Shown here: one piece after another, positions 9,511-64,000 of the stretch
Numbering within the stretch: position 1 is the stretch's first letter
Layout: the number at the start of each line of letters is the position of its first letter
From: Phaeosaccion multiseriatum
Taxonomy: Eukaryota; Protista; Ochrophyta, other classes
Direction: 5' to 3'
DNA: 64,000 bases
NCBI GenBank assembly: GCA_965112735.1
Contig: OZ218950.1
Location: forward strand, 1,736,001 to 1,800,000
Notes under the pieces: model-generated
What the model was told of the DNA's origin: nothing
The model's database searches: none
Seen by the model: only the letters and a program-made list of their open reading frames with translations
Position numbers and translations under genes: made by a program

Positions 9511-10499
9511 ATGCGCTCCTTTTCCGTCCTCTTTAGTATCTTCGGCTGGGCTGCCGTCACCTTTTCCGAGCGGGAAGTTCCAGCAGCCGTCGGTTCTTTT
9601 CTACGTGGGGCTGACGGGGTCGGCAAGCGAGCCCTGCAGGCGACAGGTGCGACCACGCGCTCGTGCTCCTCTCGCGCTCAGTGTCAAATCTCGTCTGGTG
9701 CCTTGCTCGTCGACACGCACTAACTTCCGACGACCATCTCTTTGCTCCAACGTATCTCGCCCCCCGTATCATGGCACTCGCTTCACTCCTATTCCTGTTT
9801 TGCTTCGGGTCGATGCTGTATACCCTCGCCTCTTGCGCCTCTTGTCATCCGATACAAACGACCCGCCGCCTTCCTTCGGCTCCATCCGGTGCTCATCGGG
9901 TCCCTTTGCCTCTCTTGTCAGCTGCCGTTGGACCTGGTGGAGCTTCGGCAGCAGCGGGTGGAAGCACTGCCGCAGCTGGAGGTGGAAGCGCCGCAGCCGC
10001 TGCTGGTGGAAGTGCTGCTGCAGCGGGGGGAGGTGAGGTCTTCGTGGCTTGCTTAAAATTTGCTCTCACTCACTCACTCACATCACTCACACGGACCAAC
10101 TCGCACCCAAAGGCTCGGCTGCTGCGGCGGCAGGAGGGGGCTCATCATCATCTGGAGGCGGTAAGCACGCAAAACAACACACACTCACTCACTCACTCAC
10201 TCACTCACTCACTCACTCACTCACTCACTCACTCACTCACTCACTCACTCACTCACTCACTCACTCACTCACTCACTCACTCACTCACTCACTCACTCAC
10301 TCACTCACTCACTCACTCACTCACTCACTCACTCACTCACTCACGAACGAACGAACGGCCCATCACACTCGCAGGCTCTGCTGCTGCGGCAGCAGGAGGC
10401 GGAACAGGTCCTGGTTTCGGACCTGGCGGCTCTACGGTGAGAGAGAGAGAGAGAGAGGTAGAGAGATGGCGAGAGAGGTAGATTCGAGAGATAGAGAGA

Positions 10500-14867: not shown

Positions 14868-15208
14868 CGTTCCCGCTGCTACAGCTTCTCTTATTGCTGC
14901 CTACAGAGACCACTGCCCTCCTTCAATGGCCCTCATTTGTCCTTGGTTTGGGTTCGGGGCAAACAAATCCACGATTATAAAACGCCAAAAATCAACTGAA
15001 AGTCAAACTCAATTTAGGGACCAGGAGTACAGGAGCACCGAAGTGGGCCGTCCTCTAGACACGCTCATCGAAAGGTGTGGTACTTGTGCCCCTCTCGACG
15101 CAGCACAGTGGCAATAGCCAGCCATGAGTGAGTTAGGCAGCAGCACCAGCAGCAGCAGAGCATAGCACCCTATAGCTCGAGCTGTTTGCTTTTGGCTCAC
15201 ACTCTGAT

Positions 15209-16782
15209 CTATTTCCAAACATTGTCCACGAAGAACACGAACGCCTCCTTGTAGTTCGGTTTTCTGTAGTAGCGGTATCCCGATTTACCTGCGGGAGGGG
15301 GAGTGAGTGAGTGAGTGAGTGAGTGAGTAAGTGAGGGGGAGAGGGAGGGGGGGTCAGTCTGGGAGTCAGTGAGTGAGTGAGTGAATGGGAAGGCCTCAGC
15401 AGCAACAGCAGTGCATATAGCAGAGTCAAAGAGACCATTTCAACCCCAGAGATTCGTGAGAAGAGGAGAGTTGGGTCTCCGAGGTTGGTGAGAAGAGAAG
15501 AGAAGAGATGGGCCGGCCCAACCGCCAGCAACAACAACAACATCACACAATCCTTCCTCAAAGGGTCGAGAGGCAAACAGATCGACTGGATCGGACTCGT
15601 CTCGTTGCCCTCGCCTGTGGACAAACCCTCCCCGCCTTTTCTCTCCTCACTCCCTCCAGTCCCCCCTCCCCCACCCTTCTCGCTGCCCACCTCTGAAGCG
15701 CTTCCTCTGCCCGGCAACGTTTTTGGTCCTGACCTCCCTAACGTTCAGGTTGTATATCTGCGACGAACGAACGAACACACGAAGGCACACGCAACGACAA
15801 GGTGATGATATATGCATGTGTAAGGCGAAGGCGCTCTGTTGCTCAGAGCTACGAAGGCAGGCAGGCAGGCTGGTGTCCAAGCCTTGAAGCGAAAAGAAGA
15901 AACAGTAAGTATCTTCTTCGTCCGAAGAGTCTGTGTATCTATCTTTGTCGCGTATTGCGGAGGTGTGTGGAAGCGAAGTTTGCCGACTTCGGGCACGTCG
16001 CTCGCTCAGTTCGATCATCGGACAACATCGGCAACACCCACACCGCCAGTGCTTCGCTACTCTTCGAGAGAGAAAGGAAAGAACCCTGATCAGCGAGAGA
16101 GGACGACGACGACAAACTGGCCGGTGGATCGAGACCCGATTCATGCCAACTGCGATTGTCCTCGCCTCCAGCGCCGCCCTCCACACGTCTGGCTTCGTCA
16201 CCGCTACCCCATTACCCCAACTCAACTACCCACCTTGGTCAGGTACTCCTTGACGTCCCACTTGGTCATCTTGGGAGGCACTCTGAATTTCGCCACCGGC
16301 CGGCCCTTAGTGGGGGGGCTCACCAGTCTCATGAACATGTTCGGGAACCACACCTTCGCCCCTCTCGAGCTAAGGCCTTGGAGGCCCGTGTGGCCTCCTG
16401 TCATTCCTGCTGAGTTGCTCTCCTCTCCTGTTGTGGACGCTGGTGCTGCTATTGGTGGTGTGGACGAAACTGATGATGGTGATGATGATGATGATGTGGA
16501 TAGCATTCTCTTCTTCAAAACTCCATTGAGACCAGCCATAAAGCCCGTCCTCAGTGAAGGAGGCAAAGAAGGAGACGAGGACTGCGCACCATGCTGGTGC
16601 TCGCTTGCTCTCCCTCCTCCTCCTCCACTGCTACTGCTTTTCGTGCCGTTGATACAAATACGGCAGTATGTCCCTGATTGAAACCGTCTTCCCCCTGTCG
16701 CTGCGCCTATTGCGGCACTCGATGCTTGCCTTCGCAGTCCAGAAGATAGCCTCTGGCGCAGGGCAATCGCCATCCCAATCAT
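15209..16782 (-). CDS. MRPL23: Mitochondrial ribosomal protein uL23m; exons 16782-16234, 15757-15691, 15288-15209
   Basis: R/S-rich presequence. VWFPNMFMRL..FRVPPKMTKWDVKEYLTK|IYNLNVREVRTKNVAG..RYYRKPNYKEAFV matches the uL23 pattern. In-frame TAG at 15209. Confidence 0.88.
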
Positions 16783-20384: not shown

Positions 20385-21148
20385 CTACCAACGGTGCTCC
20401 GAAAGCGGGAAAGCGGCGCGCATTTCAAGGGCACCTCTTCTTCTCGCCGCCGCCCCTGCACCCCCCGTCCCATCCCTTCCTCCTCCCCCTCCCATCATTC
20501 CCATCTGCTCGGCCACTTGCAGCTCCCGCACCAGGCCACTCCAGGTGATGCCCAGCTCATGGAGACGCAACTCCAGCTCCAACACCGCAGCCTTCGCAGC
20601 AGAGGCGACAGAGCCAGCAGAGGCAGCACATGTCTCCCTTGGTAGAGTTTCCCACCTCGCTTCAACACCACGACCGTCGTGATCATCTTCATCGTCAAGG
20701 TCAGTAAAGTCTTCATCCAGGTCGCCAAACTCGGTGCCACACAGGACGTAATCCACCGCCATGCTGCCCACCCGCGCCAGCCCTTCGGCTGTAAACTCCA
20801 TGCCGAGCTCCCTCCACTCCTCTTTCTCCTTCTGCTGCTGCCCCTCCTCCTTCTGCTGCTGTCCCTGCTCCTGCTGCTGTTCCTGCTGCCACAGCTGCTC
20901 TGCGCCAGAGCAAAGGTGCTCCTCAAGAGAGACAGCCTCGGCCAGCAGGTGGTGGCACTGCTGCCTCAGGGCGACCAAGAGCGACTCCTCCTCCCTCGAC
21001 TCGGTCGGCACCGCTAACCCAGTCCCTTCCACATCGCCGGCCGGCAGAGGTAAGTCGTCCTCTGTGTGGACTGCGTCCCCTCCATTCTGATGAGTATCGC
21101 CATCGGCCGCCCCTCCGGCTGCTCCGTTCGATGTTGCCGTACCACCAA

Positions 21149-21193
<45 letters not shown>

Positions 21194-24100
21194 ATGAGGA
21201 TGGTGGTGGTGGCGCTGGTGGTGGTGGTGCTGCTACTACTTCCAACGCTCCTCCTCCTCCTCCTCCTCCTCCTGCTGCTGCTCCTGCTGGCGGGGGCTGA
21301 TGGAGCAGTAATAGCTGGATGAGGTTTTGCTCTACGACGGGCAGGAACAAGGCCACGCCCTCTCTCACACGGGCCAGGCGCTCACCGAGGGAAAGCTCCC
21401 CTTGTCCTGACTCCTTCAAAGACAGGAGAGAAGGGAGGGCCACTGATCCAACTTCACCACCGCCTGTCTCACCGCATCTTCCTCTTCCTCCCCCTCCTCC
21501 TCCTCCTCCTCCTCCTCCTCCTCCTGCTGCTGCTGCTCCTACTCCTGCTGCTGCTGCTGCTGCTTCTGCTACTCTATTGCCGCTACTGGTGAACGTCCGC
21601 CGACCCTTCATCAGTGCCTCTACACCGCCGCCTCTTTCATTCAAACTGGTGCCATTCCTCCCTCGCAGCATCTCCGATGGGACCTTGCCAACCGAAGAGG
21701 AAGACACCGATGAGGAGGATGATATCGTCCCTGCACCTGAGCCTTGAGGGAGAGAGCTCTTCTTCCCGGCTGCAAATAGCGGTACTGACACCTGCCCCTT
21801 CTTCTTCATGGCTACCGACCACGCATCTCTCCTCCCCCCCTTCACCTTGGTCTCCAAGTGTAACGCTTGGCCTCTCTCCCTCTCCCTCTCCCTCTCCCTC
21901 TCGCTATCCCTATCCCTTCCCCTCTCCCTTTCCCTCTGCTCCCTGTCTCCACCCTGCTGCTGCCCCTTCTCTCCCACCCCTCTTGTTCTATCGTAGTCTC
22001 CGCCTCCTCCGGACGTGAGCACCGTCATTTCAGACGGAACGACGCTTCCCTCTCCATCTGATGTCCCGCGCCTTTCCTTCCCCTGTCTACCCTCCCTCTC
22101 CTCTTCCTCAACTTCTCTTTCTGAATTGTTCTCCCCAACCGCTTCCTCCTCCCTCTCCCCCTCCTCCTCCTCCTCCTCCTCCTCCTCCTCCTTCTGCCCC
22201 TCAGCGTCTTCTTTTCTCGCGTCTTCGATGGGCACATACCTTCGTCCTTCCCTCCTGAAACGTATTGGAAACATGGCAACCTTACTCACTTTCGAATTCA
22301 GCAGCTCCTCTAACGTGGGGAAAAGCCCCAACCTTCCCCGCTCGTCGGTAAAATAGCCATTCTCGTACACAAGAATGACGTGCCGAATGCCGCTGTCCCC
22401 TCCTCCCCCGTCCGCCGTAGCAGCCATCTGACCGAAGGAGCCTTGCCTATTGAGTCGACTTCCGCCATTCCTTCCATCAGCCCCTCCACCCCCGCCCCCG
22501 CTCCCACCCACACCCACACCCGCACCGCCCCCCCTACCCCTCCTCCCTTTCCCTCCTTGTGCCTCCTTCTGCGAAGCTGCAGCGGCAGAGGAGGAGGTAG
22601 CGGTTGGAGGTGGCTTCTTGGCAATGAAGCTCAGCACAAACTCAGTAGGGCTCTTCCTTCTCAGCAGGAAGGTGCCCTCCGGTCTCCCGCCGCCCTCGAG
22701 CAACAGTCCCTCGGCCTCTTCTCTGCTCAGCCAGCCTCCAAAGTACTGCCAGCCCGCGTCTGACCCCGCTCCTGCTGCTGCTGCCCCTCCTGCTGCTGCG
22801 CCCTCTCTCCTCCCTCGTGCCTCCTCCCCGCCCTCCTCGCTCGAGGGCCCCGTGGAGAGAGGCTGGACGCCCTGCTCCAGTGCCCGCCAAAACAAGACCT
22901 CTAAGCCTCGCTCGTTGACTGCCACTGCGGAAGGACTACCCACGGGAGCGGTCGATGTGGTGGTGGTGGTGGTGGTGGTGGTGGTGGTGGTGGTGGTGGT
23001 GGTGGAGGAGGAGGAGGGGGAGGAGAAGAGCGTACGCTTCAAGCCGACGGGCAGCGGATCAGGCCTTGGTGGTGATATAGTAGCAGCAGCTGCTGCAGGA
23101 TTTGGTGATACGCCTTGAAGGCTGTCCAGCTCCTCCTGCTGCTGTCTGAGACGCTCGTTGCGCTGCTTCATCATGAGCGAGTAAAGCACGCGCATGACTT
23201 CAGATACCGACAACTGGCGACTGAGCACACCACTGATCCTCTCTGCTTGACTTTCTTCATCATCCCAATCGCCCCCCCCCTGGCCCGTCCCACTCGGCTT
23301 GGATCCACCGCTGCCGCGGCGAGAGCCACCAGCGCCACCAGCGCCAGGGGCACTAGAGCCACCGGCGTAGCTTCCCCAACCTCCTCTCCTCCTCCGGCCG
23401 ATGTCGTAATCACCGAGAGACTCATTCCCCACCGTACTGTGCCACTTGCCTGAGAAGGCCGCGGCGGTGGTATAGGCGTTGAGCGCCTTCTTGCCCGCCA
23501 CGTACATGTCGGCCAAGTCCGCCTTGTGCGCTAGGAGCATCTTGACAGCTGTGGGGGGTAGGTGGGGGAGAAGGGCAGAGTGCCACTCGTCGACGGCACG
23601 GAGGCTGTGGCTGCTGGAGAGGTCGAAGACAAAGCAGACGGCGGCAGCTGCCGACCCCAGCAGGCCGTGCTGACACGCCGGGCTGTTAAGTTCGCTGGCC
23701 GACACGTCCCAGAGGTGCATCAGCACCTTCCTACTACTGCTGCCTTTGCCATTGCCAGTGTCGTTGCTGTTGCGATTGTCCCCCCTTCGGCCGCTATTCT
23801 TGTCGCTGCTGTGATCCAGGAGCGGGAAGTGCTCCTGGGGAATAATAGTCACGACATCAAAGCCTGTCAAAGAGAAGGAATGGGATAGTAAGAGATAGTG
23901 CGGGACACTGAGACATGGGGGGACGGAGAACGCAACACGGCACCGCCCTTTTTCCTTCTTCCTCCTTCCTTCCTCGCTTCCCCCGTCAACCTCTCTTCTC
24001 TCCCTTACCCTGAGTTGGTACGTAGTCATATTGGAACGACTGATTGGTCAACCTGCGCACTAGACTGGTCTTTCCCACTCCCGGGCCTCCCACGAGCAAA

Positions 24101-33800: not shown

Positions 33801-36057
33801 GTTGAGCTCCACGTATGTTTTCAGGGCCTCCAGCTCCAGGAAGAGTGTCTTTTGAGTCGAAAGAGTGACAAAGGTGGAGGAGATGGAGGATGAGAGGGAC
33901 AGAAGGACAGAGGGAGAGAGAGAGGTGGCGAGGGTAAGTGAGAGAGTGGGAGACAGAGAGAGGCAAGCGAGGGAGACAGGGGGAGAGAGGGAGAGAGAAG
34001 AATTCTTGCTCCTCGACCTGGACAAGCTCCAAGCCAGGGATGCGAAAGTCGCAGCACGGCGGGTTTAGCTCCACAAGATCGTGACATGACGTCAGCAGCA
34101 CCCACACACACACGCACACTCACACACACATATACACTCACAAACACACACATGAGCTCTCGCATTCTCCTCACTGCTGCGCGTACGTAAGTACCCCCCC
34201 CCCCCTCCTCCCTACCCCAGCCCAACTGCACTCACCCGGACTTGACGAACAGTGTTCCCTGCCGCGTTTCCCCACGCCGGGTTGAGTGAGCGATTCTTTT
34301 CGAACACAGCCAGGCCCTTCCGTGATACCAAAGAGAGAGAACGAGAGGGACACAGAGGGGGAGACGAGGAGCGACGACGACACACACATTGCGAAGGTTT
34401 GAGAGTCGCGTTCTTGACTACTGCATCTCTCTCTTCCTCTCTGCCTCTCTTCCTCTCTTCCTCTCTCTCCCCCCCCCCTCAACCACCCCTGTACTAACTG
34501 CCCTCCTGCAGCATATAGCCAAGCTGTCGGTTACATCCAAAGCGATTGGCTACATTGGGTCTGGTCATGTGATGCGAAAAAAGATGGCCACGCCAACAGG
34601 GCTCTACAGTGCCGTCCCCTGAGGACATACATCCTCATGGCGCTCGCCCAACACCTCCCTCCCTCCCTCCCTCCCTCCCTCCCTCCCTCCCTCCCTCCCT
34701 CTCTCCCTCTCTCCCTCCATCCCTCCCTCCCTCCCTCCCTCCCTCCCTGCCTCCCTCCCTCTCTCCCTCTGTGCCTCCCTCCCTCCCTCCCTGCCTCCCT
34801 CCCTCCCTCCCTCCCTCCCTCCCTGCCTGCCTCCCTCCCTCTCTCCCTCTGTGCCTCCCTCCCTCCCTCCCTGCCCACTCACCTCCTCGAGCCCGGCCTT
34901 CTTCCCCTTGAAGAAGCCTTCAACCTTCCGCAGCTCCTCCTTCACAAGCGGGAAGAACTCCATCTCTGACTCTCTTCGCTCAGCGTCTATACGCTCGTGA
35001 GCTAAGCGGATCACCTGTGCAGAAGGAGGAGGACTTATGTAAGCTTACGGAATGTTATGTACGTATGTGAGTGATCCATCTTTTCGTAAGTGCATGGATG
35101 TTCTTGGGGTATATTTGACTCCTCGTGTCGGCGTCGGCGTGGGTTATGCGGGGAGGGGCCAGTTTGAGTTTCAGTTCGAGACTATTCACGCCACAACCAC
35201 AAAAGACGCGCCACAGGCTTGCCCTAGAGCCGCGTGTGTAAACTCACCCTGTCGGGGCTGTCCAACCTAGCCGGAGGCAGGAGCGGTGCTGCTGCTGCTG
35301 CCGCCGCCGCCTCTTCATCAGCACCTGCCCCTTCTCTGCCCTCTTTGTCATCAGCTGCCTCGTTCCTGCTCCTGGGTTGCTGTTGCCTCCCTCCTCTTTC
35401 GTCGTTGTGAGACCCGTACTGAGGAGGAGCAGGAGGAGCAGTTCCGTAGTGCTTCCCTCCACTCGCCCCACCCCCCTTCGCGAGTCCGAGGCGTGCCCAG
35501 TCGCTGTCCTTCCCCTGTATTCCATATGCAGCAAGTAGACCCTCTTCCTCCTGGTTCCTGCCCTGCCGCTGCTGCTGGTGTATCACCACCTGCTCATGCT
35601 TCAAAGGCCGTTGCAGCGCTTCCTCTCCCTCCTTCTCAAGCCTCTGCTGCTGCTTCCTCGCCTTGCTCACTTCTGCATTCTCAATCAGCGAGAGGCGCTG
35701 AGGGGTGGAGGAGGCGAACCACAGCAGTAGTGAGTTCGCAGGAGGTACAAGGGGTGGGGGGTGGGGGAATGAAGTTGGAAAGCCACATCTCTCCCGTAAG
35801 TGTGAGTATAGTTTCCCCTCTTCTTTCCTCAATGTACCTGGGTCCGCAGGAACCGATACCGCTTGAGCATCCGCTTCAGTTTGTGGTATGCCTGAGGAAG
35901 AGTTGGTTTAGGAGGAGGGAGGAAGGAGGGGGCTGAATCGGCAGGAGGAAGTGGGAAGGGAAGAGAGGAGGAGGAAAGGGTGATGCGACTCTCTTACCAG
36001 GTACTTCTCTTGCCATGCGGGATAGACTCCAACGTCCAGCTGCTTGCCGAACTTCAT
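27818..36057 (-). CDS. SPX-domain SLC13/CitMHS phosphate transporter (Pho87/90/91-like), about 17 exons
   Basis: SPX: MKFGKQL..WQEKYL|AYHKLKRMLK, FFPLVKEELRKVEGFF, LKTYVELN, GFRKIIKKYDK. TM part: LWVTESLPYFATALLIP, GVAFSCNMGGM, TPIASMQN, FSWHTLILLGGG, STFVSHTVSSLILMP, ALPFSSFPN, YLTVKDFLKAGVP. Confidence 0.93.
28760..29110. repeat. (GGGA)n intronic microsatellite; a (CACT)n tract lies nearby at ~28350-28622
   Basis: Read directly. The two tracts flank the 105-bp exon 28626-28730. Confidence 0.9.
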
Positions 36058-36152
36058 CGCCGGCCCCTCTCTGCCACTCTCTCCTTCTCTCTCCCTCTCT
36101 CTCTCTCCCTCTTTTCTCTCGCTCTCTCTCTCTATCTTTCTCACTCTCTCTC

Positions 36153-36170
36153 TCAGCAGCCGAACTTCAT
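36153..36170 (-). promoter_or_regulatory. Putative uORF MKFGC* upstream of the SPX transporter
   Basis: ATGAAGTTCGGCTGCTGA; its first 12 nt are identical to the main start ATGAAGTTCGGC at 36057. Confidence 0.55.
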
Positions 36171-36816
36171 CACAGCAAGGTGGCTACTGCTACATGCACT
36201 ACCTAAGAAGGAGAATATGAAGTAATGAACAAATGGCGGAGGCGCCCGAAGCTCACTCGTTGGTGCTCCGTGTCACAAATGGTAGTCCGCCTATCGAACC
36301 CTTTCCCCCCCCCAACCCTTCCCCCCCCACACAACCCTGATGCTGTCGACCATGCTATCGGCCGCCCGATCCGCAGATAGCGCGCCGGCGATAGCAGATA
36401 GCACACCCCCCCCAAAGCCGGGTGACGCTGCGATAGCAGATAGCACCCAGACAGATAGCGGATAGCACGTCAGGGGTCGACCCACTCCACTGATGGACAA
36501 CGATGTACGAAGCTACCGTGCCAGCATCCGAGGGGGCTTGTCATCGTCGTGGTGGTCTGCCTGCTTTACTTCCAGGTGAGGCTGCTGGTCCCCCTGTTGG
36601 TCTGTGTGGTGGTTTTGTTTCCCGCCGGACCTAAGCGCGCTAATAATGGCGCTAATGATGGCTTAGGTCCCTGGGGCCACCTAATCACCACAACAGTATG
36701 CATGCGGTTCGACCTTCATTGATTGCAATGCTCCGCAGCAGGGGAACGTGTATATGTTCCGATAGTGCCACTCGCGCATTTTTGGTCGAAGGTGCCCAAG
36801 GCTGAAGTCCGCACAA

Positions 36817-37307
36817 CTTTTCCCTTCTTTCCCTCCCTTTTCTTTCTTTTCCTTTTTTCTTGCTCGCTTCTTCAGTGTCTGAGACTCAAGCCGGAAGTTG
36901 AGCTCGCATCCGAGCAGCCTCGCCAACGATGGAGCGAAAACCCACGATGGGGCGCAGAGAGGGACGAGGAAGGGAAGAGAGCGGAGCCTGAGCACGCGGC
37001 CGGGGCCGACAGGGCACACGCCTGCACAGGTCCACGACAGCATTCTTCCACTCGTCCTGCTAAGATCCAGAACGAGTGGAAGAATGCTGTCGTCGACCTG
37101 TCCAGGCGTGTGCCCTGTCGGCCCCGGCCGCGTGCTCAGGCTCCGCTCTCTTCCCTTCCTCGTCCCTCTCTGCGCCCCATCGTGGGTTTTCGCTCCATCG
37201 TTGGCGAGGCTGCTCGGATGCGAGCTCAACTTCCGGCTTGAGTCTCAGGCACTGAAGAAGCAAGCAAGAAAGACAAGAAAGAAAAGGGAGGGAAAGCAGA
37301 GAAAAGC
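36817..37307. repeat. Near-perfect inverted repeat, arms ~240 bp, centre ~37063
   Basis: Centre CATTCTTCCACTCGT-cctgctaagatccaga-ACGAGTGGAAGAATG. Mirror ORFs 36681..37229(-) and 36898..37629(+) share their N-termini. Confidence 0.95.
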
Positions 37308-37639
37308 TTCCCCGGACACGACGGAGTCGGATGAGCCATCTCCTTCATCCGCCCCTTCGGGTTTGTCCATGGACACATCCGCTGGCGTTGAGGAGAGCTC
37401 AGCCTACCCAGCAGCCTGCAATCCCTTTCGCAAACCCCCGAAGAGAGCCCACGAGGGAGTTTACCGAAAGGTGAGTAGTGCGGCACTATCCCTCACTCAC
37501 ACTTACTTACTCACTCACTCACTCACTCACTCACCCCCCTCCTCCCTTTTCATCTCTCTCCGTCTTTTTCTGCCTCAATCCCCTCCCTCTCATATCCATA
37601 CGCGTGCCACCAGAACGCTGGGAGCCTAGCTGTGGGGGG

Positions 37640-38113
37640 GAGGGGCTCCTCCCGCCAACGCCCGTCTGCGTGGGTGAGAGTACGCGTCCAGCGAAACGGA
37701 CGAAGGTTGTGGAGGAAGCGGGACCGGGGTCTGCCAGCAGCCCACCCCCCGGGGGACAGGGACGGGGAGGCTCCTCCCGCCAACGCCCGCCTGGTTCCCT
37801 GGATGAGAATAGGCCTCGCGCTGGAGGCCTATTCACATCCAGAGCACCAGGGAGGAGTTGACGGGAGGAGCCCCCCCGGTCCCTGTCCCCCGGGGGGTGG
37901 GCTGCTGACAGACCCGAGTTCCTCTTCCTCCACAACCCTCCTTTGCTTCGCTGGACGGGTACTCTCACCCAGGGAACAGACGGGCGTTGACGGGAGGAGC
38001 CTCCCCGTCCCTGTCCCCCGGGGGGTGGGCTGCTGACAGACCCCGGTCCCGCTTCATCCACAGCCCTCCTTTAAAGGAGGGTGGTAGAGGAAGAGGAACT
38101 CGGGTCTGTCAGC
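37640..38113. repeat. Nested inverted repeats of a ~125-bp unit (centres ~37820 and 38072/38073)
   Basis: Centres AGGCCTC-gcgctg-GAGGCCT and CCCTCCTTT|AAAGGAGGG. The unit GGCTCCTCCCG(C/T)CAACGCCCG...CAGCCCACCCCCCGGGGGACAGGGAC occurs in both orientations. Confidence 0.9.
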
Positions 38114-38348
38114 CGCAGCATCGCAGAAACGCAGCGGGACGCTGACCCGGCCCTGCTGCGAGGCAAGAATCATTCCGTGGTCCCCTTCCCAGGAGATGGG
38201 ACTCTCATCGTCATGGGCTTATGCCCTTCTGCCCAGTGTAACAAGGAGTCTGCGACGGAGGTGGATATGATGAAGAACCTCAAAGGAACGTTTAAGGGTG
38301 TTTCCTGGATAGATCTCCGTGTTTGGAGCGCCTCCGACAACAACAGCA

Positions 38349-39660
38349 GCATCGACCAGCGGGTCATTGCAACCTTTTCCCCGGGACGATGAGATGGTGG
38401 GCGATTGGCATCGTCGCTTGCAGGAGCAGCTTCGCACTCCCCGCAACCTCGCTGGACTGCCTGTCGTCTACTTTGCAGGGGCAACATGTCAGGCGGCTTT
38501 CGGAAAGATGAACGACAGGGGCCTTGTCTCGCTCGACACAGAGATCAACTCAGCGTTCGGCGTTGCTTGGGGTGTGGAAACTTGCCACAGGGGAGGCCTT
38601 CGTCGCCGTTCAGCGCCCCCACCCGAATTGGCATCTCGTCTCGGGTAGGAAGAAGCTCGCCGTCGACCTGTTCAAGGAGACCATGGCTATCTTGTGCGCC
38701 GCAAGCAGCATCTCCACGGCGCAAACGGCCAATACGGAGTTTGAAGCGGCGTCAAAGGAGTGCCGTCCTGCGAGCGAAGAGGCCTTGCGTCGGAGGAAGG
38801 TGGCACAGAACTGGCTGAAGATCCATTCCCTCAGCTCATGACGAGGAGGAGGAGGCCGGTATCCATGCTCGTGTCCATTGAATCCTCCCCCTCCTCCACC
38901 CCCTCAACATATAGAGGCCGTCCACCCCCCCCCCCTCTTTCTCGCGAGCTGCTCTGCCACTTCCTTCCTCTTCGCACTGACATCAGCGAAGAGGAAGGAA
39001 TCTGCTACATATACAGCAGATTCCTTCCTCTTCGCTGATGTCAGTGCGAAGAGGAAGGAAGTGGCAGAGCAGCTCGCGAGAAAGGGGTGGGGGGGGTGGA
39101 CGGCCTCTATATGTTGAGGGGGTGGAGGAGGGGGAGGATTCAATGGACACGAGCATGGATACCGGCCTCCTCCTCCTCGTCATGAGCTGAGATCTTCAGC
39201 CAGTTCTGTGCCACTTTCCTCCGACGCAAGGCCACTTCGCTCGCAGGACGGCACTCCTTTGACGCCGCTTCAAACTCCGTATTGGCCGTTTGCGCCGTGG
39301 AGATGCTGCTTACGGCGCACAAGATAGCCATGGTCTCCTTGAACAGGTCGACGGCGAGCTTCTTCCTACCCGAGACGAGATGCCAACTCGCGTGTGGGCG
39401 CTGAACGGCGACGAAGGCCTCCCCTGTGCAAAGTGTCCACACCCCAACGCCGAACGCTGAGTTGATCTCTGTGTCGAGCGAGACAAGGCCCATTTCCTTC
39501 ATCTTTCCGGAAGCCGCCTGGCATGTTGCCCCTGCAAAGTAGACGACAGGCAGTCCAGCGAGGTTGCGGGGAGTGCGAAGCTGCTCCTGCAAGCGACGAT
39601 GCCAATCGCCCACCATCTCATCGTCCCGGGCAAAGGTTGCAATGACCCGCTGGTCGATGC
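38349..39660. repeat. Large diverged palindrome, arms ~650 bp, 8-nt loop at 39007-39014
   Basis: GCATCGACCAGCGGGTC...GGAATCTGCT-acatatac-AGCAGATTCC...GACCCGCTGGTCGATGC. The arms differ by substitutions and 1-, 4- and 7-nt indels. Confidence 0.95.
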
Positions 39661-40425
39661 CTTGCTCGTTCTTGAAAAGCATCGCAGGACTTTCGGGGAC
39701 AAGAGGCTCCAAAAGATTCTCGTCAGTTCTCTCAGGACGAGTCTGACGCTATGCATCGTCCATGTGCTCACTCGAGTAATGGCGAAGTGCGCTGGGAGGG
39801 GCTGGCTTTGCCAAGTGGTTGTCGGGCAGCATCGCTTGTCGACAAGCAATGCTAGCACAGCTGAGGAGCCTGACAAAGCCATCGTCCCCCAGCGTACTTC
39901 GCCATGAATCGAGCTGCTGCGTGAACCCTGTGTCTCCCAGAGTCACACATGTCACACCTGTCTGGGAGACCCAGGGTTCACGCAGCAGCTCGACTCATGG
40001 CGAAGTGCGCTGGGAGACGATGACGTCCTCGATCATCAACCACGGAACTCAAGTCGGACAGTGCCTCCTAGAGAGGTAGTGGAGGAGGTTGGACTCGGAG
40101 ATGCTGGGGGGTAAGAAAAATGGTTCCATCGGGCTTTCGATGGTCGTCGCGGTCGCGTTTTTCGCCGCCCAATCTTGTGGGGGAAGCAAGAGGAATGTGG
40201 GCAACGGCACTCCTGCGTCGAACCCTTGTCGTGTTTGAGAATATGTGTACGAGGAGCTCCGCCACTGCTGCCTTCCTTCCTTCCTTCCTTCCTTCCTTCC
40301 TTCCTTCCTTCCTTCCTTCCTTCCTTCCTTGCTTGCTTCCGCCCTCCCCTTACGGGGCGCAAATAAGGAACAAAAAGTAGCCGGTACATCACTTACTATT
40401 TCATTTGCTGCCGTACCAACAACTG

Positions 40426-43358
40426 CTATTGCTGCTGCCCCTGGCCCTGCTGCATGGAGAGATAGGCTCCTCGCAACTCTGCCTGTACGCGCTTCAGCTC
40501 CATGTCCCTCTCCCACAACGCCTCAGAGCAGCAGCCGCACCCCCCAACCCCGTCCATTCTTCTCCTACTTCCACTCCCAGAACAGACATCGTCCTCTTCG
40601 GTTTCCGAATCCTCATGGCCACCGTGGTGCTCGTGGTGCTTGCTCTGGCGCTTGCCGGAACCCTGCTCGCGGTGGTAGGACCGCCTATTGTGGCGGCCCG
40701 GGGATGCACCACCACCACCACCACCACCACCAGGAGGAGGAGTCCTTGCCCTCTTCTTCGGCCAGTTCCGACGGCGGCGCTGTCCTGCACTCTCACCACC
40801 ACCACCACCACCACCACCCGGCGTCGAGTTGATCTTTCCCCGACCTCCTTCTCCTCCAGCTGTATCACCAACTGCTACTGCTGCTGCTGCTGCTGCCGAT
40901 CCTCCAGCCCTCTTGACACGTCTCGTTCCTCCTCGTGGCCGCAGAGGAGGAGGGGGAGTCTCGCAACAAGATGCCGGGAGGAGCGACTCCGATTCTGATT
41001 CCGATTCCAACTCCGGCTTCGGCTTCGGGTCCGGTGCTGATACTAACCCCCTCCGACCGACACGTTCGCGTCCTCGCCCAATCATAAGGCCACCATCGCT
41101 GCTTCTCGTAGTCGTGCCCGCCCCCCCCCCCGGAGGCAGTAGCCGTCGATGATGATGATGGTGATGATGATGGTTGAGCTGCTGTTGATTCCCATGAAGA
41201 GTCCTCCCCTGCTGCTTTATCACCAACTGCTGCTGCTTGTGCTGTAGCTGCAGGCGGTCCATCGCCTTCATCACGTTGGCCAGCTCCGCCTCCGCCTCCG
41301 CCCTCGCACCCCTCTCCTCGCCCACCAGACGCATGAGTCCCGCCTCCTTCCTGGCATACTTCAAAGCCATTTCCTGTAACCGCTGGTGGCTCCTCTCTGC
41401 CGCCCTGCGGATTTCCGAGTCGAAGTCTGCCTGCAGGGCCGCCTTGATATCCCTCAGTCGTGTGTTCCATTCCTCTTTGCGGCGGGCGTGGTCGCTGCGC
41501 TCAGAGGCCAAGGTTAGTGTCAGCGCCCTCGTTCGCTTGGCAATCTCCTTGTTGGTTTGCGCCCTCTCTGCCTCGAGCCTGCTCACACAAGCAGACTATA
41601 TGGTGTAGTGTGGTGTGGTGTGGTGTGGTGTGGTGTGGTGTGGTGTGGTGTGGTGTGGTGTGGTGTGGTGTGGTGTGGTGTGGTGTGGTGTGGTGTGGTG
41701 TGGTGTGGTGTGGTGTAGTGTGGTGTGGTGTGGTGTGGTGTGGTGTGGTGTGGTGTGGTGTGGTGTAGTTTGGTGTGGTGTGGTGTGGTGTGGTGTAGTT
41801 TGGTGTGGTGTAGTGTGGTGTAGTGTGGTGTGGTGTGGTGTGGTGTGGTGTGGTGTGGTGTGGTGTAGTGTGGTGTGGTGTGGTGTGATGTGGTGTGATG
41901 TAATGTGATGTGGTGTGGTGTGGTGTGGTGCGGTGTGGTATGGTGGGGAAGGGGAAGTGGGGATGGTGGGTAGGGTAGTAGGGGAACCGAACGAAAAATG
42001 ATGTGTAAGAGAGACGAGTTGACGAAGAAGAGGGGAAGGGAGGGGGGGAGGAAAAGGAGATGGCACTAGAAGAAAAGGGGTGAAATAGGGACATGTATGC
42101 ATGCACGGATGAAGGAGCTTACCCATCCACATACCCCATGACCTCGATTAAGTCAACAAGTCGAGAAAGTTCACAAGAGAGCAGCCTTGGACCCTTTGAC
42201 CTTGACCTCACTCACCTTGTCCGCGAGGGCTGCCCTGAGCTTCGCGCACGTGACCTGCTCCTTCCACTGACTGAGCTCCAGCTCCATCCGCACCTGCTTA
42301 GACAATACCACCGTTCCATAAACACAAGAAGCACAACGCCGTTCCACGATTGAAACTCAGTTGGACCCTCGCTCTCCCTCACAAAATGAAGACTCAAACT
42401 GTCCAGCTCCAAAGCCAGCAACCACCTCCCTCAATCCCTCCGCCGCACCTGCTTCATCTCGCGTCGGAGTCCTTCCATCTTGCCCTCCTGCCAGGCGCGG
42501 GCCGTCCTCTGGAGGAGCTCTGCGGCAGCCGTCTCCTCGGCACTGTACAGCGGACTTGAGGCTGAAGACGACGACGACGTGCCGGCAGGGGAAGGAGAAG
42601 GGGAAGCAGAATGGGCCGCTCTGTTGTCATGGTTGCTGCTGCTTCTTCCCCGCTCTCTCCTCTCCCTTCTCGCTCTGACTTTGTGCGCAGCCACGTCCGC
42701 AGCAAGGGCCAGCGACGTTCGTGCGATGGATGATCCTTCCTCCCGCTGTGCCTCTCTCCCTCCTTCTCCTGATGCTGCTGCTACTATTACTACTGATGCT
42801 TCTTCTGCTGCTGCCGATTCTGCCTCTGCTGCGTTGGCGACGACTAGCATCTCCCGTAGACTAGGGGGCCTCCCCACCTGCCCTTCAGCATCCCCATCTC
42901 CTTCGCCCTCCTCCGTCTCCCGCCGTTGAGGACTCTGAGGACCATCCATGGTTCCGCTGCTTCTCTCCTCCTGCCCACCCTCTCTCCGTTCTGCTCCTTC
43001 CCGGGTGGAGAAGCGACTGCTTCCATTGAGGCTGTCCTGCTCCATAATCGACTCGTGCCTAGCGTCCTCCTCGCTTTCCTCCCCCTCCTCCTTGCCCTCA
43101 TCCTTGCCCTCCTCCTCCCCCCCCCCCTTCTCCTTCGCCTCCTCTCCTCTACTGCTTTCCTTTGTCGTCTCGCCTACTGCCCCCCTGGATCCTTCCTCTT
43201 CGTCCTCCTCGTGCTCCTCCGAAGACGACTGCGCATCACCAACTCCCCGCCCCTTACGGCTTGGACTCTTAAGCCGCTGCCGCCGTCGAGAAGAAGCGGC
43301 ATGAGGCGATGATGATGATGATGGTACCACCGACACTTCTTGCCTCTCCTCTCTGTTG

Positions 43359-56623: not shown

Positions 56624-58996
56624 CTAATCGAGCAGGTGCTCCGTCATCGTCTCCGCCCTCTCGTCCCCGCCTACCGCCCTGCGTATAGCACGCTTCACCA
56701 TCTCGAGGGAGAGCTTGTTGCGTGCCTCGCCATGGCACCTCTTCAGCATCTCCAGCGCCACCTCCTCGACCGTTTCGTACTGCCTCGCCTCAACAGACGC
56801 ACGCAGTACCTTGGAGAAAGAGGACAGAGCCGACGGGATGCCCTCTTCCTTCATCTCCCTCAAAACACCCAATGCCTCCATGTGTTGGCCGGCCTTGGCG
56901 CATGCAGCAAAAGCCCTGCTATAGCTTCCTGCATTCGGAGCGGGTCCTTCTGTCTTCATCTCCCGCAACAGCCCCAACGCCTCCACGTATCGGTCGGCCT
57001 TGCTGCACACGTTCATGGCGGCGTTGTAGCTTCCTGCAGTCGGAGCGGGTCCTTCTGCCTTCATCTCCCGCAACAGCCGCAACGCCTCCACGTATTGACC
57101 GGCCTTGTTGCACACGTTCATGGCGACGTTGTAGCTTCCCGCATCCGGAGCGGGTCCTTCTGCCTTCATCTCCCGTAACAGCCCCAACGCCTCCACGTAT
57201 TGACCGGCCTTGCTGCACACGTTCATGGCGGCGTTGTAGCTTCCCGCATCCGGAGCGGGTCCTTCTGCCTTCATCTCCCGTAACAGCCCCAACGCCTCCA
57301 CGTATTGACCGGCCTTGCTGCACACGTTTATGGCGGCGTTGTAGCTTCCCGCATTCGGAGCGAGTCCTTCTGCCTTCATTTCCCGCCACAGCCTTAACGC
57401 CTCCACGTATTGACCGGCCTTGCTGCACACGTTCATGGCGACGTTGTAGCTTCCTGCATTCGGAGCGGGTCCTTCTGCCTTCATCTCCCGCAACAGCCGC
57501 AACGCCTCCACGTATTCACCGGCCTTGGCGCATGCATCAATGGCGGCGTTGTAGTTCGATACATTCGGAGCGAGTCCTTCTGCCTTCATCTCCCGTAACA
57601 GCCCAAACACCTCCACGTATCGACCGGCCTTGGTGCATACTTTAATGGCGTTGTTGTAGCTTCCTGCATTCGGAGCAGGTCCTTCTGCCTTCATCTCCCG
57701 CAACAGCCGCAACGCCTCCACGTGTGCTCCGGCCTTGGCGCATGCCTCAATAAGGCCGTTGTAGCTATTTACGTGTGGAGTAGATCCTCGAGCCTTCATG
57801 TTCCTCAAAAGCAACGGAATTCTGTCGTGCTCCCCGCTTCTGATGCAGGCCATCATCGCAAGCCTACAGTGATGCCCATTGGGTATCACGCCTTTCCCTT
57901 CCATACCCCTCAGCAGCCCAACAGCTCTGTCCGAACTACTCGACTCGAGACAGACAAGTAAGGCCTCAGTGTACACGGAATCATCAAGGGCGATGCCTAC
58001 TGCCAGCACGTAGTCCCACAGGTCCCATGCTCCATCCAACCATCCCTCCCGACGACACACACCCATGGCGATAGCAAAGTTGCCGGCATTGGCGTCCAAG
58101 CCGTACTCGGGCGCTCTTCCCAGCAGTAGCAGTGCTTCTCCAGGCTGGCCAGCTCTATCCACAGCGGCGATAGCGTCGCTGAAATTGTGATGGCTGGGTG
58201 GAACCCCATGTGTTTGCATCTCCTTCAGAAGCTGCAGTGCCTGGTCTGCCTTCCCTCCTTTGCGACACCCCCTAATCGCCGCCGAGTACGTCCGCGAGTC
58301 CGGCTGCAATCCTACTACAGGCATCTCCCGAAGAAGACCCATGGCTTCATCGTATCTTTCAGCCAGACAACAGGCGTCAATGGCGGCGTTGTAGTGGAGA
58401 ACGTTTGGCATTAGCGCTCCGTGCTTCTGCGTCTCTATCTCCCTCAGCAGACCAAGTGTCTCCTCCCATTGGCCGCAGTGGCCGAAGGCCTCCACCACTG
58501 CGTCGAGAAGCGGCGCATCAATGGGCAGTGGCGATCGCACCGCCGCCTCCCACTCACCTCTCACTCTCTTCCAGTCCTTGGCCTCACGCGCGGCTTCCAA
58601 GCGCTCCAGTGTCTCGAGCCACAACGAGGGGGCTGCTGGGGAGGCATTGTGAGTAGGCACCGCAGAGGGAGAGGGGCCACAAGTTGAGAAAAAAGCCCCC
58701 TCCCTGGTACTGCGCGCCACGAGAGATCCACCCCACCGGTGCGACAAGAACCTCGCCAGATACGCAGGGGTGACAGCAAAGGCAGGGGCTGGCGCGGCAC
58801 CAGATGCGGAATACGGAGCACCAGGAGCTCTCCGCCGCCTGTTACTTCTGCTACTGGTGCTGCTGGTGCTGCTCCTGCTGCTGCTGGTGCTGCCACTGCT
58901 GCACGCTCTCCTCATCATCATCTTCATGCACCCAGCACCCACATCATCTGCGCTGCCTAAAAGTAACGACTTCAACCGCCCCATCTGGAACCCCAT
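56624..58996 (-). CDS. Pentatricopeptide repeat (P-class PPR) protein, intronless, probably organelle-targeted
   Basis: At least 15 35-aa motifs, e.g. SYNAAMNVCSKAGQYVEALGLLREMKAEGPAPD. R/S-rich N-terminus. Start uncertain (several Met). Confidence 0.95.
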   Translation of the reverse strand: MGFQMGRLKSLLLGSADDVGAGCMKMMMRRACSSGSTSSSRSSTSSTSSRSNRRRRAPGAPYSASGAAPAPAFAVTPAYLARFLSHRWGGSLVARSTREGAFFSTCGPSPSAVPTHNASPAAPSLWLETLERLEAAREAKDWKRVRGEWEAAVRSPLPIDAPLLDAVVEAFGHCGQWEETLGLLREIETQKHGALMPNVLHYNAAIDACCLAERYDEAMGLLREMPVVGLQPDSRTYSAAIRGCRKGGKADQALQLLKEMQTHGVPPSHHNFSDAIAAVDRAGQPGEALLLLGRAPEYGLDANAGNFAIAMGVCRREGWLDGAWDLWDYVLAVGIALDDSVYTEALLVCLESSSSDRAVGLLRGMEGKGVIPNGHHCRLAMMACIRSGEHDRIPLLLRNMKARGSTPHVNSYNGLIEACAKAGAHVEALRLLREMKAEGPAPNAGSYNNAIKVCTKAGRYVEVFGLLREMKAEGLAPNVSNYNAAIDACAKAGEYVEALRLLREMKAEGPAPNAGSYNVAMNVCSKAGQYVEALRLWREMKAEGLAPNAGSYNAAINVCSKAGQYVEALGLLREMKAEGPAPDAGSYNAAMNVCSKAGQYVEALGLLREMKAEGPAPDAGSYNVAMNVCNKAGQYVEALRLLREMKAEGPAPTAGSYNAAMNVCSKADRYVEALGLLREMKTEGPAPNAGSYSRAFAACAKAGQHMEALGVLREMKEEGIPSALSSFSKVLRASVEARQYETVEEVALEMLKRCHGEARNKLSLEMVKRAIRRAVGGDERAETMTEHLLD
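56845..57775. repeat. Tandem array of about 9 highly similar 105-bp units (PPR-coding)
   Basis: Unit ...CCTTCTGCCTTCATCTCCCG.AACAGCC.CAACGCCTCCACGTATT.ACCGGCCTTG... recurs every 105 bp. Confidence 0.95.
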
Positions 58997-59229
58997 CTGT
59001 GAAGATCCTGTGAAGCGGGTCGGAGCACCCTTCACCCTTCTTTCCGCTGGCCGTGTGAGGACTGCTTCAGTATGGCAGAGAGAAAGAGATTTTTAGGCTG
59101 CTGTCTCTCCGCCCTCCAGAAGCTCTAGCACTGTATTGTATCTCGGGAGCTGAGGCCCCTCCTTCCCCTTCTGCTCTTCTCGGCACCGCGAGTACTCCTG
59201 CTCTCCAGGCAAAGCGACTGCTTCATGCT

Positions 59230-63181: not shown

Positions 63182-63261
63182 CTTCGTGGGAGAGAGAGAG
63201 GGAGGGAGGGAGGGAGGGAGGGAGGGAGGGAGGGAGGGAGGGAGGGAGGGAGGGAGGGAGG

Positions 63262-63642
63262 GAGTGTGGAAAGTCAGTCGTATGTCAGTGGCCCAGGCCT
63301 AGGCAACGCAGTGAGAAACGGTGCCCGTTTCTCACTATCCTCCTGTAGGTGGTCGTTTAGGACAGTGCATAGATAAGCTAATAGATACAAGGCCGGCTGT
63401 CAGGCTAGCTTTGGGGTGCTGCTACCTTATCTGTGTGTCTAGTCCGTTTCGTGGAGGTCTAAGCACGACTTTCCACAACCCCAAAGCCAGCCTGGCAGCC
63501 AGCCTTGTCTCTATTAGCTTTATCCGTGAGCCATCCTAAACGACCAACCTGCTGGGAGGTGAGTGAGAAACGGGCCACGCACCGTTTCTCACCGTATTTG
63601 CCTGGGCCTGGGCCATTGACATAATACTGACTTTCAACATCC
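63262..63642. mobile_element. Putative fold-back/MITE-like element (imperfect ~150-bp arms, ~60-bp spacer) in the cathepsin intron
   Basis: GAAAGTCAGTCGTATGTCAGTGGCCCAGGCCTAGGCAA...GCTTTGGGGT (63269-63417) mirrors ACCCCAAAGC...TTGCCTGGGCCTGGGCCATTGACATAATACTGACTTTC (63477-63635). No clear TSD. Confidence 0.55.
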
Positions 63643-64000
63643 CCGTCAGCCATCCCTGCACTTCTAACATCCCCCTGAACTAAACTATTGCGTGTCCCCA
63701 CGCAACTCAAAGCGGGTTCGCCTACTAAAGCTCGACTTGTAGCAAAAGCCTCCATGTTGCTTCCAATAAAAACGGATGAGAAATATGCAAAACTCACCCA
63801 GGTGTGTGCGACCGCTCCTCCAACACACACCCTCCTGTATTGGTGAGAAAACCCCACGACTCAAACTCACCCACACAGGCTCACGGATGAGAACATCCCA
63901 TGACTCAAACTCACCCGCGCAATTCTCTATCTCCACTCCTACTCGCCACCAGCGTTGCCAAAGCCTCGTTGCGCACCACTAATGCTGACTGCTCAAGTGT

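Follow-up and report, generated by a model that had tools for sequence, protein, structure and literature searches.

Six fold-back junctions in and upstream of a decayed member of a lineage-restricted gene family in Phaeosaccion multiseriatum

In a 64,000-nucleotide stretch of the Phaeosaccion multiseriatum genome (hereafter, the window), a region of about 3.2 kb repeatedly runs forward, folds back and resumes forward. The initial annotation interpreted this region as a chain of at least six palindromes, all made from one gene, and proposed two origins, serial template switching or a hairpin-RNA locus that silences intact paralogs. The locus thus raises the question of whether the palindromes are genuine, from what sequence they were made, and whether they are debris of mutation or a maintained source of small RNA.

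Six fold-back junctions within 3.2 kb

When positions 36501–40500 were compared with the entire 64-kb window by BLAST, with matches of the sequence to its own reverse complement retained, six palindromes (P1 to P6) were detected over 3.2 kb, with E-values of 7e-14 to 0 and arm identities of 73–95% (Table 1). All six of the symmetry centres listed in the initial annotation were present, and the junction between ATCGCTTGTC and GACAAGCAAT, which had been placed at about 39840, was located in the sequence. The arms differ at 3–23% of positions; as had been described, the differences comprise substitutions, which dominate, together with a few indels of 1–10 nt, and transitions and transversions were about equally frequent in the arm alignments. 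Across 241 aligned positions, the P1 arms show 8 substitutions and 3 gap runs, and the P4 arms show 18 substitutions across 656 positions, identity reaching 99% across the inner 177 bp of P4. Four inverted segments (243, 249, 660 and 109 bp) break the plus strand, and each adjoins its own template, of which it is a reverse-complement copy. No sequence was shared among the six palindromes. Under strict criteria, a scan for short-loop palindromes found four in the whole window, all of them within the cluster, and none in five second-order Markov controls, while minus-strand self-BLAST of the whole window detected, beyond the cluster, a single weak palindrome (63260–63643, 74%).

Inverted segments 2 and 4 each take part in two palindromes. 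Segment 2 consists of units of a repeat of approximately 125 bp, which are backed by direct repeats D4, D6 and D7, by inverted repeats I5–I7 and by alignment; its unit S4 is 92% identical to S2, and the 44-bp x piece of S3 matches 38073–38116 at 93% identity. Around segment 4, the P6 right arm directly repeats 39771–39798 at 93% (D8, I8). A direct–inverted–direct order, which pre-existing tandem repeats could mimic, is present at 37702–38116 and at 39771–40022. P1 and P4 are duplications only and lack this order.

Table 1. Palindromes and component segments of the locus (window positions; arm identities, scores and E-values of P1 to P6 from self-BLAST)
Feature	Coordinates	Strand	Centre	Loop (nt)	Arm identity	Score or E-value	Description
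P1	36817–37306		37063/4	16	93.8% over 497 columns	752 bits	
P2	37637–38006		37821	6	84.6%	E 3e-113	
P3	38029–38116		38072/3	0	79.5%	E 5e-16	
P4	38338–39674		39010/11	8	94.8% over 1352 columns	2105 bits	
P5	39771–39913		39841	0	72.6%	E 7e-14	centre in GTCGAC
P6	39880–40022		39951	19	86.3%	E 1e-43	
Inverted segment 1 (P1 left arm)	36817–37059	-					inverted copy of 37068–37306
P1 right arm	37068–37306	+					upstream, looks non-coding; outer end CT/AG-rich
P2 left arm	37634–37823	+					units S1 (partial) and S2 of the ~125-bp repeat (x-y-z)
Inverted segment 2	37824–38072	-					units S3 and S4 of the ~125-bp repeat; left end forms P2, right end spacer-less P3
Decayed plus-strand copy of the N-domain (predicted UDG fold)	38073–38830	+					first 44 bp (x) are the P3 right arm
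P4 left arm	38338–39006	+					second half of the N-domain, then ~175 bp of downstream non-coding sequence
Inverted segment 3 (P4 right arm)	39015–39674	-					preceded by the P4 loop, 39007–39014
P5 left arm	39762–39842	+					remnant of one 33-aa family repeat; in-frame stop
Inverted segment 4	39843–39951	-					family repeat unit (hmmsearch 39946–39839, positions 350–384, iE 1.4e-3); left end forms spacer-less P5, right end P6
P6 right arm	39962–40027	+					further repeat-unit remnant (weak tblastn, P0003 residues 453–474)

Short-read contigs from the same sample bridged P3 (contigs over 38014–38409) and the centres of both P5 and P6 (contigs 39601–40262 and 39601–40161) with 0 mismatches. Both of the diverged P4 arms were likewise represented in short-read contigs at approximately single-copy depth (X6, 69–77 versus 64–87 in the flanks). 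Together, the bridged junctions and the depth of the P4 arms make it improbable that chimeric reads or collapsed alleles account for the pattern. The six fold-back junctions were confirmed as real.

An assembly artefact, in which the pattern would stem from long reads that are fold-back chimeras or from the head-to-head joining of two alleles, is highly improbable. It could draw on the short-read tables, in which bridging of the P1, P2 and P4 centres does not appear and contigs begin exactly at 39015, on the inner, 99%-identical part of P4, which did not reach the double single-copy depth predicted for two copies, and on X5, a second sample under the same species label, which covers the flanks and almost none of 36844–38757 or 39280–40323. 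However, a coverage gap in X5 is no proof of absence, P3, P5 and P6 are bridged, and the locus is internal to a contig reaching megabases on either side. In addition, substitutions distinguish the arms, and short-read contigs reproduce each version with 0 mismatches and with full single-copy depth, indicating that the arm variants are neither read errors nor half-depth alleles; collapsed alleles were rejected because the arms are at full, not half, depth. As regards the missing double depth in the inner part of P4, loss of snap-back fragments from the libraries or the reporting of mean contig depth could explain it.

A pseudogene of a lineage-restricted family

The decay of the gene was mapped by hmmsearch with the family HMM in six frames, by tblastn with 26 family proteins and by translation. 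Six-frame hmmsearch matched the family HMM at 38108–38820 (plus strand), 39664–39179 (minus), 39946–39839 (minus) and, weakly, 39762–39842 (plus); the last assignment is based on tblastn with P0007 residues 251–274, a weak hmmsearch match to positions 325–351 (iE 0.41) and motif comparison. The statement that all of the palindromes were made from one gene consequently holds for the right arm of P3 and for P4, P5 and P6, and fails for P1 and P2, which have no family homology; the P1 left arm matched neither the family HMM nor Pfam.

The gene encodes an N-domain of approximately 250 aa with a predicted UDG-superfamily fold, followed by remnants of 33-aa repeats. In the plus-strand copy, family homology at 38108–38820 is spread across three frames, indicating two frameshifts, and an in-frame stop is located near 38384. 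The minus-strand copy contains an uninterrupted 190-codon ORF (39143–39712), which matches family HMM positions 110–270; it is 5′-truncated, the first 110 HMM positions being missing. The proteins of the P4 arms are 88–92% identical, compared with approximately 97% for the DNA, thereby indicating that almost all of the P4 changes alter the protein. Since nearly every difference between the arms within the coding part is non-synonymous, selection is not acting on the protein, and the locus appears to be selectively neutral. The gene is thus real and decayed, a pseudogene of a lineage-restricted family. Two other gene models were discarded. A first exon at 37369–37470 with a GT donor gave no in-frame join to the N-domain, and an arrangement of two complete convergent paralogs was incompatible with a minus-strand copy from which the first 110 positions of the profile are absent and with repeat remnants that lie on the wrong side.

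HMMER found 26 members of the family among 1.8 billion representatives, the best at 41–48% identity. The members carry conserved motifs, of which LGLYP and RPHPSWHL stand at the usual UDG places, a likeness judged by eye only. An AlphaFold2 (AF2) model of relative P0001 (pLDDT 88) had as its top structural matches UDG, TDG, UdgX or MUG proteins in 37 of 37 cases, with Z scores of 7.2–9.9 over approximately 150 residues, and this model assigns the UDG alpha/beta fold to the family's N-domain. The Z scores came from a second-look aligner, Foldseek alone being weak for this fold (E >= 0.07), and a protein atlas gave a weak UDG lead (score 0.84). Sequence profiles gave no match: Pfam matched none of five ORFs of the region, the UDG profile PF03167 matched none of ten family members at E<=0.1 and none of the window pieces at E<=1, and a PDB sequence search with the 190-aa ORF, as well as PHROGs and viral-contig scans for the family, found nothing. 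The predicted fold and the placement of the motifs are common to this N-domain and the UDG superfamily (family 4 UDG, UdgX, TDG/MUG), whereas here the domain is fused to 33-residue repeats and the copy in the window is broken. The locus also records a eukaryotic family, not named before, in which a putative UDG-fold domain is combined with 33-residue repeats.

Origin of the inverted segments

We consider that local inverted duplications, produced by fold-back or template switching, probably rearranged the pseudogene together with the region upstream of it, and that the palindromes are most likely mutational debris. The FoSTeS/MMBIR-like template switching suggested in the initial annotation fits the anatomy, with four inverted copies adjacent to their templates, short or absent loops and two forward–back–forward segments, 37824–38072 and 39843–39951, each bordered by a direct copy on either side; this anatomy supports a process of fold-back or template switching that occurred repeatedly. 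In such a process, a 3′ end or a stalled nascent strand would fold back on itself at a very short inverted repeat, or switch to a complementary template, and copying would then proceed backward for 0.1–0.7 kb before switching to forward again. Every turning point would leave a palindrome with a loop of 0–19 nt, giving the six centres. The event at P4 would part the N-domain from its repeats and may itself have inactivated the gene, and any hairpin RNA from the locus would be a by-product. Among relatives, the intact multi-repeat L003 has no palindrome, and L001 has four, all beyond the conserved coding part.

Compared with the best template, the copies differ by approximately 3% in P1 and P4 and by approximately 7–10% in segments 2 and 4, from which we infer at least two rounds of duplication. 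In segments 2 and 4 divergence is not a clean clock, since their arms may be repeat units that differed before the duplication, and a simple inversion within a tandem array would yield the same two junctions. It is unlikely that one complex replication-based event, of the chromoanasynthesis type, made all or most of the junctions, with pre-existing tandem repeats explaining the differences in identity. Such an event would be in keeping with the similar arm divergence of P1 (3.3% substitutions) and P4 (2.7%), with the tight clustering of the junctions, outside which the strict scan found no short-loop palindrome in the 64 kb, and with the tandem-repeat contexts of segments 2 and 4 (125-bp units and 99-bp coding repeats, respectively); yet a copy is identical to its template at birth, and the divergence of 7–10% between segments 2 and 4 and their best-matching templates, against 3% for P1 and P4, points to at least two ages.

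Several other mechanisms were considered and rejected. A foldback or MITE transposon is contradicted by the single-copy depth over P1 and P4, by the lack of a target-site duplication, none being found at the borders of P1, and by arms that are gene sequence; single-copy depth in particular indicates that P1 is not a multi-copy foldback transposon. RIP-like mutation of duplicates would leave an excess of transitions, whereas the transition to transversion counts were 6:12 in P4 and 4:4 in P1. A snap-back retro-copy, formed by self-primed cDNA, does not fit a P4 loop that lies at the 3′ side of the gene and not at the 5′ side.

Template switching underlies the inverted triplications and fold-back inversions of human DUP-TRP/INV-DUP and FoSTeS/MMBIR rearrangements. 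In yeast, ODIRA generates inverted triplications by replication template switching (PMC4689423, PMC10766183). The segments at 37824–38072 and 39843–39951 resemble ODIRA and DUP-TRP/INV-DUP products in their forward–inverted–forward order, in junctions placed at very short inverted repeats and in loops that are short or missing; simple fold-back inverted duplications are the nearest counterpart of P1 and P4. In contrast to those systems, which span kilobases to megabases, the segments here measure 0.1–0.7 kb and enclose no known replication origin, and four events lie within 3.2 kb of fixed, partly aged germ-line sequence instead of fresh amplifications. At a smaller scale, short template-switch mutations give rise to hairpins and to de novo miRNA precursors (PMC5453318, PMC8794818, PMC10710096). 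There too, nearby sequence is copied as its reverse complement and a stem arises in one step, by which mutation could lead to structured RNA, but those mutations involve tens of bases, whereas the arms described here reach 668 bp and their template is a coding gene. If local inverted duplication is indeed the origin, the locus would represent a clean, dated case in which errors of replication or repair shred a gene into palindromes at the sub-kilobase scale, with simple inverted duplications and forward–back–forward modules together at one locus. Six junctions within 3.2 kb are a high density if chance mutation alone was at work, and selection or a local hot spot may have contributed.

Potential for a hairpin RNA

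Drosophila hpRNA loci silence young selfish gene families (PMC10292708, PMC10317233), and by analogy the present locus might be a maintained hairpin-RNA gene, in which the dsRNA stem of P4 would be diced into siRNAs that silence intact members of the UDG-fold/repeat family. A putative transcript through P4 was predicted to fold into one long stem of approximately 660 near-perfect bp (MFE -1424 kcal/mol), and the arms derive from the coding sequence of a gene family, so that, as in Drosophila hpRNA loci (PMC10292708, PMC10317233), a long inverted repeat was made from such sequence. We nevertheless regard this function as distinctly unlikely. P1 and P4 alone are long and near-perfect, whereas P3 and P5 are at 73–80%, a pattern of decay rather than maintenance. 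Milder counter-indications are that no family paralog was found elsewhere in the 64-kb window and that the depth of the arms was single-copy with reads accepted from 90% likeness, indicating that no close target copy is visible in that sample. The locus also differs from the Drosophila loci in being known from DNA alone and in including short decayed palindromes that would be useless for silencing. The sequencing runs found were of one sample only and genomic-DNA-like, genic and non-genic sequence being covered to an even depth and contigs reaching 221 kb.

A broader and very doubtful idea is that the genome turns decaying gene-family copies into hairpins unusually often and that some of these, including the present one, are transcribed and diced into siRNAs that police the family. 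Such a system would amount to an equivalent, in a protist or alga, of the Drosophila hpRNA loci, seen at several stages of birth and decay in one place. If fold-backs abound in the genome, they may reflect an unusual tendency to fold-back repair; there would then perhaps be a large pool of potential hairpin-RNA precursors, in which the birth of small-RNA genes could be observed directly.

Rfam and tRNA scans of the window found nothing, word-index protein searches with the neighbouring ORFs did not match the same locus in another assembly, and no un-rearranged ancestral allele was recovered, X5 yielding fragments only. The locus had been described as lying between ordinary genes, which is only roughly the case, since its flanks consist of low-complexity, coding-like ORFs, microsatellites and an approximately 10-fold repeated element at 36322–36495.

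Fold-back palindromes in the cluster

Repeat finding and self-BLAST of positions 36501-40500 against the window detected six self-reverse-complement matches, P1 to P6 (see table). The positions agreed with the fold-back centres and the central sequence quoted in the initial annotation, and the chain of palindromes is confirmed. In a strict scan, four short-loop palindromes were found in the 64-kb window, all within the cluster; five Markov controls contained none. Self-BLAST of the whole window against its minus strand revealed just one further palindrome, a weak one outside the cluster (63260-63643; 384 bp, 74% self-complementary), which adjoins a (GGGA)n microsatellite.

Features of the palindrome cluster; arm substitutions were counted per aligned position in a global alignment of the left versus the right arm
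Feature	Position	Strand	Identity or match	Loop	Arm substitutions
P1	36817-37306		93.8%, 752 bits	16 nt	8/241
P2	37637-38006		84.6%, E 3e-113	6 nt	22/181
P3	38029-38116		79.5%, E 5e-16	0 nt	9/44
P4	38338-39674		94.8%, 2105 bits	8 nt	18/656
P5	39771-39913		72.6%, E 7e-14	0 nt	16/69
P6	39880-40022		86.3%, E 1e-43	19 nt	7/69
Segment 1	36817-37059	-
Plus block	37068-37818	+
Segment 2	37824-38072	-
Plus block	38073-39006	+
Segment 3	39015-39674	-
Plus block	39675-39842	+
Segment 4	39843-39951	-
Plus block	from 39962 on	+
N-domain; three different frames (two frameshifts), in-frame stop	38108-38820	+
Uninterrupted 5'-truncated copy, profile positions 110-270	39664-39179	-	HMM/tblastn
Repeat unit	39946-39839	-	iE 1.4e-3
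Weaker repeat unit, contains stop	39762-39842	+	HMM/tblastn

Since orientation alternates along the plus strand, four inverted segments yield the six junctions. Segments 2 and 4 form forward-back-forward modules; at P1 and P4 there is only an inverted duplication. Alignment showed that segment 2 consists of two minus-orientation copies of a ~125-bp unit, with one and a half plus copies on its 5' side and, on its 3' side, a plus copy of the first 44 bp only, which runs on into the gene. In segment 4, a single repeat of the gene runs in the minus direction, with plus-oriented units on either side. In the global alignments, transitions and transversions were about equally frequent among the arm differences, indels were few and short, and a transition excess of the RIP kind was absent.

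The run searches yielded only five sequencing runs of one sample (X1-X4 and X6) and one run, X5, of a second sample labelled as the same species; all were compared over 35800-41000. With their even depth and contigs as long as 221 kb, the first five resemble genomic DNA sequenced as short reads. Mismatch-free contigs spanned 38014-38409, including the P3 centre, and 39601-40262, including the centres of P5 and P6. Contigs over 39015-39386 (a single 1-nt gap) and 39313-39660 (one mismatch, one gap) represented the P4 right arm, the left arm had depth over most of its length, and X6 depth at the locus was close to that of the flanks (69-77 vs 64-87). The arm contigs and the flank-like depth indicate that both diverged arms are present in every genome copy; raw-read error, identical-copy chimeras and joined alleles were thereby excluded. 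The claim that the arms differ by substitutions and small indels was borne out by the global alignments, and both versions occurred in short-read contigs. None of the short-read contigs listed crossed the P1, P2 or P4 centres. Contigs started exactly at 39015, as is expected when a de Bruijn graph meets a hairpin, and the inner 177 bp of P4 (99% identical) were not at double depth.

X5 covered 35838-36074 and 40350-40698, and almost nothing of 36844-38757 or 39280-40323; such a coverage gap proves nothing by itself, and it hints at a strain difference, which may be presence/absence or a strongly diverged allele. The inner arms of P4 differ only at positions 39085 and 39088, within a G/C homopolymer. 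An X4 contig on the right inner arm carried the left-arm state at both, and X6 and X1 matched the assembly; possible causes are conversion between the arms, heterogeneity, or a switch of path by the assembler.

A decayed member of a UDG-fold family

The minus arm of P4 holds a 190-codon ORF with no Pfam match and no PDB sequence match. HMMER, run exhaustively over 1.8 billion representatives, returned 26 relatives (best, 41-48% identity), among them three from the NCBI assembly GCA_017506865.1 and others from metagenomes. They share an N-domain of ~250 residues with the motifs LGLYP, N..IDQ, VYIAG.TCQ and RPHPSWHL, and many also contain tandem 33-residue repeats. An AlphaFold2 model of one relative, P0001, built from the family alignment (pLDDT 88), had UDG-superfamily enzymes (family 4 UDG, UdgX, TDG and MUG) as its best 37 structural matches, with Z 7.2-9.9 over ~150 residues; the next, unrelated match had Z 6.6. 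The predicted structure thus supports a family combining a UDG fold with repeats; at the sequence level, UDG membership (Pfam PF03167) was not found.

The family was placed at the locus with its HMM on six frames of 35000-42000 and tblastn with the 26 proteins. The order of intact relatives, N-domain then repeats, is kept on the plus strand and not on the minus strand, so the plus copy is the original gene and the minus pieces are secondary. Neither search detected family homology in P1 or P2, whose source is therefore upstream non-coding sequence; the earlier statement that all palindromes were made from one gene was only half right, failing for these two. The P4 arms encode proteins 88-92% identical, versus ~97% for the DNA. 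Nearly all of their substitutions alter the protein, so neither copy appears to be under protein-level selection.

In the relative's assembly, four palindromes were found in 44 kb; all lay in a single 17-kb locus around a family member, outside the conserved coding sequence of the family, and an intact 12-repeat member had none. Palindromy therefore belongs to the decayed window copy and not to the family. The four (3928-4104, 8730-8882, 9761-10192 and 15179-15315 of that locus) are old, at 67-86% identity, and two lie within doubtful 'introns' of the gene model.

Probable inverted copying and the silencer hypothesis

The loops are short or absent, each inverted copy adjoins its template, and two modules run forward-back-forward. 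These features support the structural reading first proposed, template switching, and point to replication or break repair in which a strand was primed by fold-back or switched template. FoSTeS/MMBIR and DUP-TRP/INV-DUP are relevant to this signature. So are ODIRA (PMC4689423, PMC10766183) and short template switches (PMC5453318, PMC8794818, PMC10710096). Explanations by a transposon, a retro-copy or paired paralogs each failed on specific features. This type of rearrangement is already known, and the locus adds a case that stands out chiefly for its density.

A new inverted copy would be identical to its template at birth. Divergence from the best template was ~3% for P1 and P4 and ~7-10% for segments 2 and 4 (92% identity between two opposite copies of the ~125-bp unit, S4 and S2; 93% between the 44-bp piece of S3 and the gene; 86-94% for P6), from which we infer at least two rounds of inverted copying, although divergence is a poor clock in tandem-repeat contexts and a simple inversion would give identical junctions at segments 2 and 4. 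The P4 event would have parted the N-domain from the repeats and may thus be the inactivating lesion; the plus-arm frameshifts would have been acquired later, because the minus copy still reads through.

The initial annotation also proposed a hairpin-RNA silencer. A transcript through P4 is predicted to form a ~660-bp stem, an ideal Dicer substrate, in a layout resembling the design of Drosophila hpRNA loci (PMC10292708, PMC10317233). However, the window contains no paralog, the reads gave no sign of extra copies at at least 90% identity, and decay, not maintenance, is what the shorter palindromes suggest. A silencer role is somewhat disfavoured, and a maintained one seems improbable. Short of proof of small RNAs or of a pattern across the whole genome, the locus is of moderate to low interest.

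Surroundings of the cluster

The cluster lies between two microsatellites, (CT)n at 36077-36154 and (CCTT)n at 40271-40340. Just upstream of it, 36322-36495 and 36649-36696 had about tenfold depth (4037 vs ~450 in X4), and many contigs stopped there with unrelated continuations, likewise in the second sample; these intervals probably represent a piece of a multi-copy element. At 36605-36692 there is a small inverted repeat with 32-nt arms. Microsatellites are extremely abundant in the window (88 TRF rows); tetranucleotide arrays of up to 0.5 kb are common among them, for example (CACT)n, (CCTT)n and (GAGG)n. A 1214-aa ORF at 20385-24029 (-) had weak Pfam matches to Ras (E 9e-4) and SH2 (E 5e-5) and no relatives at E<=1e-10 in a word-index search. 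At 56624-59035 (-), an 803-aa PPR protein (PPR_2, E 3e-87) has 35-residue repeats, 8 or 9 of which are encoded by a 105-bp tandem array (56844-57767), whose 85-90% identity suggests recent repeat expansion or homogenisation.
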